Below are positions 24,941-54,267 of a stretch of DNA of 64,000 bases, in pieces. Made by a program: the position numbers and the translations under genes. The notes beneath the pieces were generated by a model, which ran no database searches, had not been told where the DNA came from, and saw nothing but the letters and a program-made list of their open reading frames with translations. This DNA comes from Obrimoposthia wandeli (taxonomy: Eukaryota). Location of the stretch: assembly GCA_977020255.1 (NCBI GenBank), contig CDROCS010001209.1, positions 124,001 to 188,000 of the forward strand. Direction: 5' to 3'. Within the stretch, counting starts at the first letter, position 1, and every line of letters starts with the position of its first letter.

Positions 24941-25025
24941 TGGTGCGGAAGGAGAGACTTGAACTCTCACACCTTGCGGCGCCAGAACCTAAATCTGGTG
25001 CGTCTACCAATTCCGCCACTTCCGC
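24941..25025 (-). tRNA. tRNA-Leu(TAG), type A
   Basis: GCGGAAG..CCAGA-TTTAGGT-TCTGG..CTTCCGC-ACCA, 85 nt. Confidence 0.97.
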
Positions 25026-25108
25026 ATATCTAATTTGCTCTTAACGAGCTTACATCGCTTAACTATAAGTCTTCTTGGTAAGAAGTAATCAAGCCACATA
25101 ATTAAATG

Positions 25109-25183
25109 TGGCAGGGCTACCTGGATTCGAACCAGGGGATGGCGGCATCAAAAGCCGCTGCCTTACCGCTTGGCGATAGCCCT
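25109..25183 (-). tRNA. tRNA-Gln(TTG)
   Basis: AGGGCTA..GCGGC-TTTTGAT-GCCGC..TAGCCCT-GCCA, 75 nt. Confidence 0.97.
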
Positions 25184-25241
25184 ACAGTTGTTCACTTAAG
25201 AACAGTTCTCTATTTAAAGAGAATAATAAGTCTTTAGAGAA

Positions 25242-25326
25242 TGGTGCGGAAAGAGAGACTTGAACTCTCACACCTTGCGGCGCCAGAACCTAAATCTGGT
25301 GCGTCTACCAATTCCGCCATTCCCGC
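25242..25326 (-). tRNA. tRNA-Leu(TAG), type B acceptor stem
   Basis: Acceptor GCGGGAA/TTTCCGC; otherwise as type A. Confidence 0.95.
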
Positions 25327-25442
25327 ATATATCTCATTCGAATAAATCCGATTGAGTGTTCTCTAGAGCTTATTGTACAGATTGAAGAACTGGTAAAGCT
25401 CAATCTGTATTACTGTGATAAATCACAGTCACAAAGTATAAA

Positions 25443-25527
25443 TGGTGCGGAAGGAGAGACTTGAACTCTCACACCTTGCGGCGCCAGAACCTAAATCTGG
25501 TGCGTCTACCAATTCCGCCACTTCCGC
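25443..25527 (-). tRNA. tRNA-Leu(TAG), type A
   Basis: Same sequence as 24941-25025. Confidence 0.97.
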
Positions 25528-25572
25528 GTATTTATACTTTTACCATAAATCGACTCAAAAAGAGAAGAAAAA

Positions 25573-25649
25573 TGGTGGCTACGACGGGATTCGAACCTGT
25601 GACCCCATCATTATGAGTGATGTGCTCTAACCAACTGAGCTACGTAGCC
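25573..25649 (-). tRNA. Elongator tRNA-Met(CAT)
   Basis: GGCTACG..CATCA-CTCATAA-TGATG..CGTAGCC-ACCA, 77 nt. Confidence 0.97.
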
Positions 25650-25715
25650 ATTTATTTATGCCGCTTAACTGTTTAGCTTCTTAAAAAGAAGTTAATCAAG
25701 CCACATAATTAAATG

Positions 25716-25790
25716 TGGCAGGGCTACCTGGATTCGAACCAGGGGATGGCGGCATCAAAAGCCGCTGCCTTACCGCTTGGCGATAGCCCT
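25716..25790 (-). tRNA. tRNA-Gln(TTG)
   Basis: Same sequence as 25109-25183. Confidence 0.97.
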
Positions 25791-25875
25791 ACAATGTTTC
25801 ATCAAAAATCGTTTGTTCAAATGCCATGTTTATTTAAAACAATCGACTTAAGAACAATTCTCTTCGCAAAGAGAA

Positions 25876-25960
25876 TGGTGCGGAAGGAGAGACTTGAACT
25901 CTCACACCTTGCGGCGCCAGAACCTAAATCTGGTGCGTCTACCAATTCCGCCACTTCCGC
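25876..25960 (-). tRNA. tRNA-Leu(TAG), type A
   Basis: Repeat copy. Confidence 0.97.
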
Positions 25961-26043
25961 ATATCTAATTTGCTCTTAACGAGCTTACATCGCTTAACTA
26001 TAAGTCTTCTTGGTAAGAAGTAATCAAGCCACATAATTAAATG

Positions 26044-26118
26044 TGGCAGGGCTACCTGGATTCGAACCAGGGGATGGCGGCATCAAAAGCCGCTGCCTTA
26101 CCGCTTGGCGATAGCCCT
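26044..26118 (-). tRNA. tRNA-Gln(TTG)
   Basis: Repeat copy. Confidence 0.97.
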
Positions 26119-26150
26119 ACAGGTGTATCTTTTAATAAGTCTTTAGAGAA

Positions 26151-26235
26151 TGGTGCGGAAAGAGAGACTTGAACTCTCACACCTTGCGGCGCCAGAACCT
26201 AAATCTGGTGCGTCTACCAATTCCGCCATTCCCGC
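26151..26235 (-). tRNA. tRNA-Leu(TAG), type B
   Basis: GCGGGAA/TTTCCGC acceptor. Confidence 0.95.
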
Positions 26236-26368
26236 ATATTGTCTCATTCGAATAAATCCGATTGAGTATATCTCTAAAGCTTATTGTACAGATCTAAGAA
26301 TTGGTAAAAACTCGAACTGTACATGTGTTAATCACCGAATGATTAACGATTCTTTATTCAAAGAATAA

Positions 26369-26453
26369 TGGTGCGGAAGGAGAGACTTGAACTCTCACAC
26401 CTTGCGGCGCCAGAACCTAAATCTGGTGCGTCTACCAATTCCGCCACTTCCGC
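26369..26453 (-). tRNA. tRNA-Leu(TAG), type A
   Basis: Repeat copy. Confidence 0.97.
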
Positions 26454-26536
26454 ATATCTAATTTGCTCTTAACGAGCTTACATCGCTTAACTATAAGTCT
26501 TCTTGGTAAGAAGTAATCAAGCCACATAATTAAATG

Positions 26537-26611
26537 TGGCAGGGCTACCTGGATTCGAACCAGGGGATGGCGGCATCAAAAGCCGCTGCCTTACCGCTTG
26601 GCGATAGCCCT
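26537..26611 (-). tRNA. tRNA-Gln(TTG)
   Basis: Repeat copy. Confidence 0.97.
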
Positions 26612-26670
26612 ACAGTTGTTCACTTAAGAACAGTTCTCTCGTGAAAGAGAATAATAAGTCTTTAGAGAAA

Positions 26671-26755
26671 TGGTGCGGAAAGAGAGACTTGAACTCTCAC
26701 ACCTTGCGGCGCCAGAACCTAAATCTGGTGCGTCTACCAATTCCGCCATTCCCGC
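26671..26755 (-). tRNA. tRNA-Leu(TAG), type B
   Basis: GCGGGAA/TTTCCGC acceptor. Confidence 0.95.
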
Positions 26756-26871
26756 ATATATCTCATTCGAATAAATCCGATTGAGTGTTCTCTAGAGCTT
26801 ATTGTACAGATTGAAGAACTGGTAAAGCTCAATCTGTATTACTGTGATAAATCACAGTCACAAAGTATAAA

Positions 26872-26956
26872 TGGTGCGGAAGGAGAGACTTGAACTCTCA
26901 CACCTTGCGGCGCCAGAACCTAAATCTGGTGCGTCTACCAATTCCGCCACTTCCGC
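26872..26956 (-). tRNA. tRNA-Leu(TAG), type A
   Basis: Repeat copy. Confidence 0.97.
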
Positions 26957-27001
26957 GTATTTATACTTTTACCATAAATCGACTCAAAAAGAGAAGAGAA
27001 A

Positions 27002-27078
27002 TGGTGGCTACGACGGGATTCGAACCTGTGACCCCATCATTATGAGTGATGTGCTCTAACCAACTGAGCTACGTAGCC
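27002..27078 (-). tRNA. Elongator tRNA-Met(CAT)
   Basis: Repeat copy. Confidence 0.97.
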
Positions 27079-27144
27079 ATTTATTTATGCCGCTTAACTG
27101 TTTAGCTTCTTAAAAAGAAGTTAATCAAGCCACATACTTAAATG

Positions 27145-27219
27145 TGGCAGGGCTACCTGGATTCGAACCAGGGGATGGCGGCATCAAAAGCCGCTGCCTT
27201 ACCGCTTGGCGATAGCCCT
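27145..27219 (-). tRNA. tRNA-Gln(TTG)
   Basis: Repeat copy. Confidence 0.97.
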
Positions 27220-27304
27220 ACAATGTTTCATCAAAAATCGTTTGTTCAAATGCCATGTTTATTTAAAACAATCGACTTAAGAACAGTTCTCTTCGCAAAG
27301 AGAA

Positions 27305-27389
27305 TGGTGCGGAAGGAGAGACTTGAACTCTCACACCTTGCGGCGCCAGAACCTAAATCTGGTGCGTCTACCAATTCCGCCACTTCCGC
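27305..27389 (-). tRNA. tRNA-Leu(TAG), type A
   Basis: Repeat copy. Confidence 0.97.
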
Positions 27390-27437
27390 ATCTGGTAATT
27401 TTACATCTTGCGATGCTTCATCTCAAAAGAGTGAAGA

Positions 27438-27514
27438 TGGTGGCTACGACGGGATTCGAACCTGTGACCCCATCATTATGAGTGATGTGCTCTAACCAAC
27501 TGAGCTACGTAGCC
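27438..27514 (-). tRNA. Elongator tRNA-Met(CAT)
   Basis: Repeat copy. Confidence 0.97.
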
Positions 27515-27581
27515 ATTTTATTTATGCCGCTTAACTATTTGCTACTTAAAAAAGAAAGCAATTAAGCCACATAATTAAATG

Positions 27582-27656
27582 TGGCAGAGCTACCTGGATT
27601 CGAACCAGGGGATGGCGGCATCAAAAGCCGCTGCCTTACCGCTTGGCGATAGCCCT
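27582..27656 (-). tRNA. tRNA-Gln(TTG) variant with C70U (G3:U70 pair)
   Basis: Plus strand reads tggcagAgcta instead of tggcagGgcta at 27588; the spurious ORF translation changes from MWQG to MWQS accordingly. Confidence 0.9.
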
Positions 27657-27741
27657 ACAATGTTTCATCAAAAATCGTTTGTTCAAATGCCATGTTTATT
27701 TAAAACAATCGACTTAAGAACAGTTCTCTTCGCAAAGAGAA

Positions 27742-27826
27742 TGGTGCGGAAGGAGAGACTTGAACTCTCACACCTTGCGGCGCCAGAACCTAAATCTGGT
27801 GCGTCTACCAATTCCGCCACTTCCGC
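27742..27826 (-). tRNA. tRNA-Leu(TAG), type A
   Basis: Repeat copy. Confidence 0.97.
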
Positions 27827-27873
27827 ATCTGGTAATTTTACATCTTGCGATGCTTCATCTCAAAGAGTGAAGA

Positions 27874-27950
27874 TGGTGGCTACGACGGGATTCGAACCTG
27901 TGACCCCATCATTATGAGTGATGTGCTCTAACCAACTGAGCTACGTAGCC
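27874..27950 (-). tRNA. Elongator tRNA-Met(CAT)
   Basis: Repeat copy. Confidence 0.97.
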
Positions 27951-28017
27951 ATTTTATTTATGTCGCTTAACTATTTGCTACTTAAAAAAGAAAGCAATTA
28001 AGCCACATAATTAAATG

Positions 28018-28092
28018 TGGCAGGGCTACCTGGATTCGAACCAGGGGATGGCGGCATCAAAAGCCGCTGCCTTACCGCTTGGCGATAGCCCT
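28018..28092 (-). tRNA. tRNA-Gln(TTG)
   Basis: Repeat copy. Confidence 0.97.
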
Positions 28093-28176
28093 ACAGTGTT
28101 TCATCAAAAACCGTTTGTTCAAAGCCCTGTTTATTTAAAACAAGTCATTTAAGAACAGTTCTCTTCGCAAAGAGAA

Positions 28177-28261
28177 TGGTGCGGAAGGAGAGACTTGAAC
28201 TCTCACACCTTGCGGCGCCAGAACCTAAATCTGGTGCGTCTACCAATTCCGCCACTTCCGC
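28177..28261 (-). tRNA. tRNA-Leu(TAG), type A
   Basis: Repeat copy. Confidence 0.97.
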
Positions 28262-28309
28262 ATCTGGTAATTTTACATCTTGCGATGCTTCATCTCAAAA
28301 GAGTGAAGA

Positions 28310-28386
28310 TGGTGGCTACGACGGGATTCGAACCTGTGACCCCATCATTATGAGTGATGTGCTCTAACCAACTGAGCTACGTAGCC
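28310..28386 (-). tRNA. Elongator tRNA-Met(CAT), first gene of the operon
   Basis: Repeat copy; directly downstream of the promoter. Confidence 0.97.
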
Positions 28387-53017: not shown

Positions 53018-53053
53018 TTGCTTAATATTCAGTGCTGAGTATTATAGGCGACC
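53018..53053 (+). promoter_or_regulatory. Probable sigma70 promoter of the tRNA-Pro array
   Basis: TTGCTT (53018-53023), 16-bp spacer, TATTAT (53040-53045), then aggcgacc; AT-rich upstream. Confidence 0.6.
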
Positions 53054-53078
53054 TCAACAGCACTCCTGTTGATTATGT

Positions 53079-53177
53079 CGGTGAATAGTAGAGCTTGGTA
53101 GCGCATCCTGATTTTAGGTATAGCGGACCAGAGGGACGGGGGTAAACCTTTACCTTGTTTAGCCTCTTCACTGATAA
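53079..53177 (+). ncRNA. tRNA-Pro-derived 99-nt element (type B), ends ATAA instead of ACCA
   Basis: Pro acceptor and D-loop sequence retained; anticodon region cctgattttaggtatagcgg; T loop aaacctttaccttgtttag. Confidence 0.75.
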
Positions 53178-53241
53178 CTATTATTTCTATTGGATGTAAG
53201 TCGGATAGAATCAATCTGGTAAGATTTAAAATATACAATGT

Positions 53242-53258
53242 CGGTGAATAGCGCAGCT

Positions 53259-53291
<33 letters not shown>

Positions 53292-53318
53292 GGGGTTCGA
53301 ATCCCTCTTCACCGACCA
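53242..53318 (+). tRNA. tRNA-Pro(TGG), canonical
   Basis: CGGTGAA..TCTGG-TTTGGGA-CCAGA..GGGGG-TTCGAAT-CCCTC-TTCACCG-ACCA, 77 nt. Confidence 0.97.
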
Positions 53319-53382
53319 CTATTATTTCTATTGGATGTAAGTCGAATAGAATCAATCTGGTAAGATTTAAAATATACAATGT

Positions 53383-53481
53383 CGGTGAATAGTAGAGCTT
53401 GGTAGCGCATCCTGACTTTAGGTATAGCGGACCAGAGGGTCGGGGGTAAACCTTTACCTTGTTTAGCCTCTTCACTGATAA
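53383..53481 (+). ncRNA. tRNA-Pro-derived 99-nt element (type B)
   Basis: As 53079-53177 but with cctgactttagg. Confidence 0.75.
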
Positions 53482-53545
53482 TTATTATTTCTATTGGATG
53501 TAAGTCGAATAGAATCAATCTGGTAAGATTTAAAATATACGATGT

Positions 53546-53644
53546 CGGTGAATAGTAGAGCTTGGTAGCGCATCCTGACTTTAGGTATAGCGGACCAGAG
53601 GGTCGGGGGTAAACCTTTACCTTGTTTAGCCTCTTCACTGATAA
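53546..53644 (+). ncRNA. tRNA-Pro-derived 99-nt element (type B)
   Basis: Same body as 53383-53481. Confidence 0.75.
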
Positions 53645-53708
53645 TTATTATTTCTATTGGATGTAAGTCGGATAGAATCAATCTGGTAAGATTTAAAATA
53701 TACAATGT

Positions 53709-53725
53709 CGGTGAATAGCGCAGCT

Positions 53726-53758
<33 letters not shown>

Positions 53759-53785
53759 GGGGTTCGAATCCCTCTTCACCGACCA
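53709..53785 (+). tRNA. tRNA-Pro(TGG), canonical
   Basis: Same sequence as 53242-53318. Confidence 0.97.
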
Positions 53786-53849
53786 CTATTATTTCTATTG
53801 GACGCAAGTTGGATAGAATGAATCTGGTAAGATTTAAAATATACAATGT

Positions 53850-53866
53850 CGGTGAATAGCGCAGCT

Positions 53867-53899
<33 letters not shown>

Positions 53900-53926
53900 G
53901 GGGTTCGAATCCCTCTTCACCGACCA
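53850..53926 (+). tRNA. tRNA-Pro(TGG), canonical
   Basis: Same sequence as 53242-53318. Confidence 0.97.
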
Positions 53927-53990
53927 CTATTATTTCTATTAGATGTAAGTCGAATAGAATCAATCTGGTAAGATTCAAAATATACAATAT

Positions 53991-54089
53991 TGGTGAATAG
54001 TAGAGCTTGGTAGCGCATCCTGATTTTAGGTATAGCGGACCAGAGGGTCGGGGGTAAACCTTTACCTTATTTAGCCTCTTCACCGACCA
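53991..54089 (+). ncRNA. tRNA-Pro-derived 99-nt element (type B body) with intact CACCG-ACCA 3' end
   Basis: Type B inserts, U1 instead of C1, canonical 3' acceptor strand and CCA. Confidence 0.75.
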
Positions 54090-54153: not shown

Positions 54154-54232
54154 CGGTGAATAGCGCAGCTTGGTAGCGTTATCTTGCTAAAATCAGAGAG
54201 GGTCGGGGGTTCGAATCCCTCTTCACCGACCA
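54154..54232 (+). ncRNA. tRNA-Pro-derived 79-nt element (type C) with replaced anticodon arm
   Basis: Near-canonical D arm, canonical T arm, acceptor and CCA; anticodon region ttatcttgctaaaatcagaga. Confidence 0.75.
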
Positions 54233-54238
54233 CTTTCG

Positions 54239-54267
54239 AAAGCCTCGTCTTAGGACGAGGCTTTTTT
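54239..54267 (+). terminator. Intrinsic terminator of the tRNA-Pro array
   Basis: aaagcctcgtc-ttag-gacgaggctttttt. Confidence 0.9.

Follow-up and report, generated by a model that had tools for sequence, protein, structure and literature searches.

The tyrT distal repeats of E. coli (RNA product RtT, RF00391) are tandem units, each containing part of the tRNA gene that precedes them, having arisen through unequal recombination, and they are co-transcribed with the tRNA and released during its processing. Closer to the locus described here, Giroux, Beaudet and Cedergren (J Bacteriol 1988) reportedly found a highly repetitive P. phosphoreum tRNA-Pro/tRNA-His cluster containing tRNA-Pro pseudogenes, and Giroux and Cedergren (J Bacteriol 1989) are said to have compared the operon among related bacteria. 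The 1988 and 1989 P. phosphoreum papers are cited elsewhere for the occurrence of tRNA pseudogenes in clusters (bioRxiv 10.1101/370668; PMC4041420). Literature searches returned no modern descriptions of pseudo-tRNA-Pro elements.

The window, meaning the whole 64-kb stretch of DNA analysed, is bacterial and represents a Photobacterium contig lying within a eukaryote assembly of 1.35 Gb and 6912 contigs. P. indicum appears to be the closest organism, since a homologue search places the neighbouring TraB/GumN protein at 93% identity to its P. indicum counterpart. The contig carries a tRNA-Pro(UGG) operon of eight head-to-tail units, comprising three canonical genes, four pseudo-tRNA-Pro units (type B) and one last unit (type C), arranged as follows.

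53018..53045, plus strand: promoter-like TTGCTT, 16 nt, TATTAT, followed by a G+C-rich stretch, located by eye
53079..53177, plus strand: type B unit 1, a pseudo-tRNA-Pro standing first in the operon and ending in CACTGATAA (alignment)
53242..53318, plus strand: canonical tRNA-Pro(UGG), unit 2 (ARAGORN; Rfam tRNA 66.9 bits)
53383..53481, plus strand: type B unit 3 (alignment; RNA-library contigs)
53546..53644, plus strand: type B unit 4, identical to unit 3 (alignment; RNA-library contig)
53709..53785, plus strand: canonical tRNA-Pro(UGG), unit 5 (ARAGORN; Rfam tRNA 66.9 bits)
53850..53926, plus strand: canonical tRNA-Pro(UGG), unit 6 (ARAGORN; Rfam tRNA 66.9 bits)
53991..54089, plus strand: type B unit 7, with both cassettes, whose first pair is U1:G72 and whose CACCGACCA end is intact (alignment)
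54154..54232, plus strand: last unit, type C, a tRNA-Pro body with an overwritten anticodon arm (ARAGORN, Rfam)
54238..54265, plus strand: intrinsic terminator of the operon, a 12-pair stem followed by a T run (terminator scan)

The promoter-like site at 53018..53045 is probably the operon promoter; a consensus promoter scan omitted it, its −35 hexamer matching at only 3/6 positions. At the opposite end of the array, the type C unit is labelled 'Phe(aaa)' by ARAGORN and scores 39.5 bits with the Rfam tRNA model, its anticodon arm remaining unaligned. The last unit of the P. indicum array, unlike this one, is a normal tRNA-Pro, and a type B unit stands beside it at the corresponding place. The type B units of the window are mutually 97–100% identical (unit 7 versus unit 3, 97%), and no further type B unit occurs elsewhere in the whole assembly. 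The fourth of them, at 53991–54089 and with its CCA end intact, falls outside the range 53079–53644 covered by an earlier, sequence-only reading of the locus. Minus-strand ORFs of 109–203 aa running through the array (53029–54083) are rejected as repeat artefacts, which gene callers may annotate as hypothetical proteins. A separate dense array of 23 tRNA genes, in which Leu(UAG), Gln(UUG) and Met(CAU) units recur, occupies window positions 24941–28386 on the minus strand.

Alignment of the eight units agrees to the base with the substitutions that the sequence-only reading had listed for type B. Specifically, the 5′ half of the D stem changes from GCGC to GTAG, the anticodon-region segment ctggtttggg becomes cctga(t/c)tttaggtatagcgg (+10 nt), the T-loop segment tcgaatc becomes aaacctttaccttgtttag (+12 nt), and the 3′ end of units 1, 3 and 4 changes from CACCGACCA to CACTGATAA, converting CCA to TAA. 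The acceptor stem pairs as claimed, with 7/7 pairs including one G:U. Around these replacements, type B keeps the acceptor strands, D loop, variable loop and most of the T stem of tRNA-Pro, together with the 3′ half of the anticodon arm (GGACCAGA) and the discriminator A, while CCA remains in unit 7. In the anticodon arm, a 19-nt cassette takes the place of 9 nt (positions ~29–35), composed of a small hairpin whose loop is U-rich and, after it, a linker rich in purines that reads TATAGC in the window units and AATAGC in most relatives. Because the units are 97–100% identical and the same cassette recurs in other species, this pattern is not a product of chance.

The loss of translation use that had been claimed for type B is borne out by both tRNA detectors. 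A unit was counted as a tRNA if it reached the RF00005 gathering score (29 bits) or was called by ARAGORN. In the array of the window, ARAGORN calls the three normal tRNA-Pro genes and the aberrant last unit but nothing else, while type B has no match to the Rfam tRNA model (RF00005) even at E ≤ 1. Structurally, a D stem of 3–4 pairs is absent from type B, the 5′ GTAG being unable to pair with the 3′ GCGC, and the 5-bp anticodon stem with its 7-nt loop and U33 is likewise absent, the cassette having replaced the 5′ strand of the stem and loop positions 32–35. A TTCGAAT-type T-loop consensus is missing from all four type B units, each of which carries a 19-nt cassette there instead. The units are unusable as tRNAs and cannot decode. 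An intron reading is rejected as well, as excising any insert cannot bring back the lost 5′ strand of the anticodon stem.

Compared with the P. phosphoreum cluster as it was reportedly described, the window locus is alike in genus, in operon type (repeated tRNA-Pro, often with tRNA-His) and in the presence of tRNA-Pro-derived non-functional units, and the anticodon cassette of the phosphoreum-type elements retrieved is 85% identical to that of type B. Type B of the profundum clade differs in that its T loop is rewritten as well, its D stem no longer pairs and its CCA end is mutated, and by standing free within the operon rather than as a tRNA-abutting leader or a post-terminator copy. In the tyrT repeats, no more than the final ~19 nt of the tRNA are present, whereas type B carries nearly the whole tRNA body, and the RtT model (RF00391) finds no match in the window at E ≤ 1. 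YrlA and the tRNA-like domain of tmRNA share with type B a tRNA-derived architecture without decoding function, but they keep a T arm and acceptor mimic recognised by proteins, whereas type B has lost the T-loop consensus. The YrlA model (RF02553) gives only a sub-threshold match in one relative, at 28.7 bits against a cut-off of 69, overlapping ordinary tRNA-like sequence.

Within the genus, 232 units were classified from the loci returned by a search of 67 Photobacterium species genomes, yielding 97 canonical tRNA-Pro genes, 58 full-length B-like units defined by the anticodon cassette plus an enlarged T region, 56 leader elements and 21 truncated or other units. A leader element comprises the first ~57 nt of a B-like unit and a ~35-nt tail, which directly adjoins a canonical tRNA-Pro. 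The full-length copies are found 3′ of the operon terminator in most species, each with its own terminator copy; free-standing B-like units inside the operon are confined to the profundum/indicum clade, whose units additionally have a replaced T loop, a disrupted D stem and, often, a mutated CCA end. One more distant Photobacterium carries divergent versions of type B. Across these relatives, the acceptor 5′ strand drifts (TGG, CAG, TAG, CAT, GCGA) against a fixed 3′ strand, which indicates that pairing has been lost without compensation. The D stems are broken on either side depending on lineage, the T region varies in sequence and in length (+12 to +25), and the 3′ end reads GATAA, GATCA, GAGCA or GACCA. 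Genome G041 contains mosaic units of both kinds, joining a B 5′ part to a normal T arm and a normal 5′ part to a B T cassette, which shows exchange between B units and real genes.

Two further features of the genus concern single clades. In the P. phosphoreum-like clade (L027, L031, L034, L044), the T-region cassette CCCTGATATTAGAACCTAGC closely resembles the anticodon cassette CTCTGATGTTAGGAATAGC, as if both loops had received copies of a single short cassette. At the array ends of four species (L032, L039, L041 and L042), the final copy beyond the terminator breaks off inside the anticodon cassette and continues into a shared flank, an arrangement suggestive of an old deletion junction that a clade has inherited.

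Beyond the genus, the lineage was traced with the strict pattern GCATC-N12-28-GGACCAGAGGG, the reversed pattern serving as control. It occurs in 107/301 Vibrionaceae genomes, distributed as 51/67 Photobacterium species and 56/234 others, and the reversed control gives 0. All four type B units of the window fit this lineage, having the tRNA-Pro(UGG) 5′ half, a 15–25-nt cassette and GGACCAGAGGG, and in the window and its relatives alike the B units lie within or adjoining a tRNA-Pro(UGG) array. A slightly relaxed pattern recovers related elements in ~34 genomes of other families of the same order, where they always adjoin tRNA-Pro(UGG) (28 loci inspected, L086–L113). These loci contain 1–5 tandem leader elements directly upstream of tRNA-Pro(UGG), for example L089:532-1798 (minus strand) and L095:990-1260 (plus strand), in operons that read Arg-His-Leu-Pro or Arg-His-Pro where the upstream genes are annotated (L086–L093). 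Each leader begins with the 5′ half of tRNA-Pro and continues with a cassette hairpin, a linker rich in purines and a hairpin based on CCAGAGGG. The pseudo copy always has the acceptor 5′ strand of the resident tRNA-Pro, whether CGGCGTT, CGGTGAT or CGGTGAA, and this tracking argues for homogenisation. The hairpin 3′ of GGACCAGAGGG keeps its GACCC or CCCTCT partner even where the T stem of the resident tRNA differs.

The anticodon cassette is the distinguishing mark of an old and widespread pseudo-tRNA-Pro lineage, and type B represents a branch of it specific to one clade. Neither type B nor the leader elements of other families match any Rfam family. A search of plasmids and phages found no copy of the elements, and an origin as a mobile element is rejected for want of such a match; the exact T-cassette 20-mer, searched across genome contigs, gives only 3 chance matches, in Clostridia and Saprospiraceae. 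Several loci show other arrangements. In genome G369, L097:1015-1460 (minus strand) holds three tandem tRNA-Pro-like units with an anticodon cassette only, which contains a 5-bp TCTAC/GTAGA hairpin, the T arm and CCA end being normal; these units are thus intermediate between a real gene and type B. In L094:1740-2160 (minus strand) and L105:995-1200 (plus strand), the T regions of the pseudo-tRNA-Pro units are enlarged by long internal repeats of the type AAAGATCGTTCAGACACAAAGCTGTCGCTT.

Contigs from three marine-sediment metatranscriptome libraries span type B unit 3 or 4 together with adjoining spacer. Those of runs X15 and X17 span unit 3 together with spacers, and the contig of run X16 covers 53566–53694 (unit 4). 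The depth of the B units in these contigs is similar to that of the tRNA-Pro units and low overall. The contigs fit co-transcription of the B units, with DNA carry-over possible and processing outside their reach.

With a probability somewhat above an even chance, type B is explained as a set of co-transcribed, non-decoding pseudo-tRNA-Pro units maintained by concerted evolution. According to this explanation, the units would originate as non-decoding copies of the neighbouring tRNA-Pro(UGG) gene, and unequal crossing-over together with gene conversion involving the real genes would copy, shuffle and homogenise them. They would be transcribed from the operon promoter within a single precursor, would make poor substrates for RNase P and for CCA-end formation, and would be released as by-products, much like spacers, during excision of the real tRNAs. 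The observations that carry this explanation are that type B is unrecognisable as tRNA, that the lineage occurs widely and never apart from tRNA-Pro(UGG) genes, that its tRNA-like parts follow the resident tRNA-Pro, and that mosaic units exist. Decay is further indicated by the uncompensated acceptor changes, the variously broken D stems, the variable length of the T region, the missing consensus fold, the weak z-scores and, in most species, the location of the full-length copies beyond the operon terminator. The support for co-transcription is weakened by the low depth of the RNA contigs and the possible DNA carry-over. Against a purely neutral version stand the conservation of the cassette and the following hairpin where the tRNA-Pro spacers are randomised, a small covariation signal in the cassette hairpin, and the persistence of the lineage across several families despite direct repeats, where a neutral relic would be expected to vanish. 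These repeats, formed by a pseudo-unit's own 5′ half and that of the next tRNA, flank each pseudo-unit and should ease its precise loss, and long persistence would accordingly argue against pure neutrality.

These same observations lend some weight to a less probable, tentative alternative, in which selection maintains the 5′ module of type B and of the half-tRNA leaders as an undescribed RNA element in precursors of tRNA-Pro(UGG). This module extends from the 5′ half of tRNA-Pro through the hairpin of the cassette and the linker rich in purines to GGACCAGAGGG and the hairpin after it. A cis-acting role is conceivable, for instance in guiding folding, in RNase E/P processing or in setting the dosage of the tRNA-Pro downstream; alternatively, the module may partly mimic tRNA-Pro and so bind or titrate a factor specific to that tRNA. 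Persistence of the lineage in Vibrionaceae and other families favours such a role, as do the presence of B units in RNA libraries and the GGG-N2-6-GACCC signature, which is kept even where the T stem of the resident tRNA-Pro differs. Conservation points the same way: between genomes so diverged that their tRNA-Pro spacers are no more alike than random (0.40 versus a null of 0.39), identity amounts to 0.73–0.78 in the anticodon cassette (null 0.52–0.56), 0.67 in the following hairpin (null 0.52) and 0.59 in the rest of the tail (null 0.52). At short divergence, however, the cassette changes at the same rate as the spacers.

The pairing evidence for a selected module is likewise two-sided. The cassette tends to form a hairpin of 3–6 bp (mean z −0.66, t −2.6, n=19), and its own strands pair better than re-paired ones, giving 3.5 versus 3.14 bp, a value reached by 6/5000 re-pairings, and in a second comparison 3.65 versus 3.11 bp, reached by 14/3000. 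These effects are real but small, at ~0.5 bp, and in two large clades the most frequent cassettes have almost no folding energy (0 to −0.2 kcal/mol). Moreover, the copy number ranges from 0 to 13 per genome, the position is free (leader, in-operon or post-terminator), and the module has no known factor, processing site or phenotype and no Rfam family. GGA motifs occur in the cassette, one GGA belonging to the tRNA itself; CsrA-type binding at these motifs would be speculation. A selected role of the cassette module is possible, and it is not needed to explain the window.

An improbable alternative, advanced in the sequence-only reading, takes type B as a free-standing structured non-coding RNA of ~99 nt with an acceptor-like stem, a new anticodon hairpin and a two-state enlarged T arm. 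In its favour, 98.6% of the proposed pair cells can pair when 12 distinct copies, taken from the window and the relatives nearest to it, are compared, and both T-region hairpins can be drawn in the copies of the window. The T arm, claimed to reach about 10 bp, does extend, forming 9 pairs (one G:U) plus one G-G mismatch; the alternative GGTAAA/TTTACC segments are complementary, but full pairing would leave a 2-nt loop, and at most 5 bp can form. When the type B units are folded alone, their MFE z-scores of −0.87 to −1.50 are weak, and the ensemble is diffuse, the MFE structure accounting for only 1–2% of it. A canonical tRNA-Pro folded likewise scores no better (z −1.73), yet its MFE structure makes up 11% of the ensemble.

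Comparison among relatives weighs further against a free-standing structured RNA. The 12 close copies contain zero two-sided changes at any pair of the proposed fold, pair 69:81 of the enlarged T arm is broken in 3/12 copies, and the alternative GGTAA/TTACC hairpin loses its pair 67:74 in 8/12. The RNAalifold consensus of 48 full-length relatives reaches −5.15 kcal/mol with no compensatory pair, and the T cassette is lineage-specific in sequence and length. Two mutually exclusive helices that are both conserved among relatives are not found, neither helix carrying a compensatory change. Of the retained pairing that had been claimed, only the short anticodon-cassette hairpin shows a small covariation signal, an excess of complementarity across lineages, and the enlarged arms lack compensation. 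The case for a two-state structured RNA is weak.

Still less probable, and very unlikely, is a role at the DNA level, in which the rewritten T region and mutated 3′ end would act as internal promoters that raise the transcription of units further downstream, or the units would serve as recombination substrates that tune array size. The mosaics show recombination among units, and a consensus scan locates a promoter-like TTTACC-18-GATAAT in units 3 (53453–53482, plus strand) and 4 (53616–53645, plus strand). However, 4 such sites are found versus 4.1 expected from shuffles, the hexamer is missing from units 1 and 7, and the 3′ end is variable among relatives; with no excess over shuffled sequence, the internal promoter is rejected. 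Integrase scars are rejected by reasoning only: the inserts occupy the classical anticodon-loop and T-loop crossover sites, but integration leaves displaced 3′ fragments and not rewritten whole copies. Finally, the reading of type B as an unusual yet functional, chargeable tRNA, to which the kept acceptor stem and discriminator A and the CCA of unit 7 would lend themselves, is already effectively refuted by the ARAGORN, Rfam and alignment results, the units being without tRNA match or call, anticodon stem, 7-nt anticodon loop, D stem and T-loop consensus, and CCA being missing from 3/4 of them.

Half of the tRNA-Pro array therefore escapes tRNA finders because it consists of pseudo-tRNAs and not of a new decoding system. 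A tRNA-Pro-derived module with a conserved cassette, absent from Rfam, accompanies the essential tRNA-Pro(UGG) in many marine gammaproteobacteria. If this module is selected, elements that act on tRNA precursors would gain a new kind; an unselected module would instead provide a clear case of concerted evolution keeping dead array copies alive for a very long time. Either outcome is testable in culturable Vibrio or Photobacterium strains.
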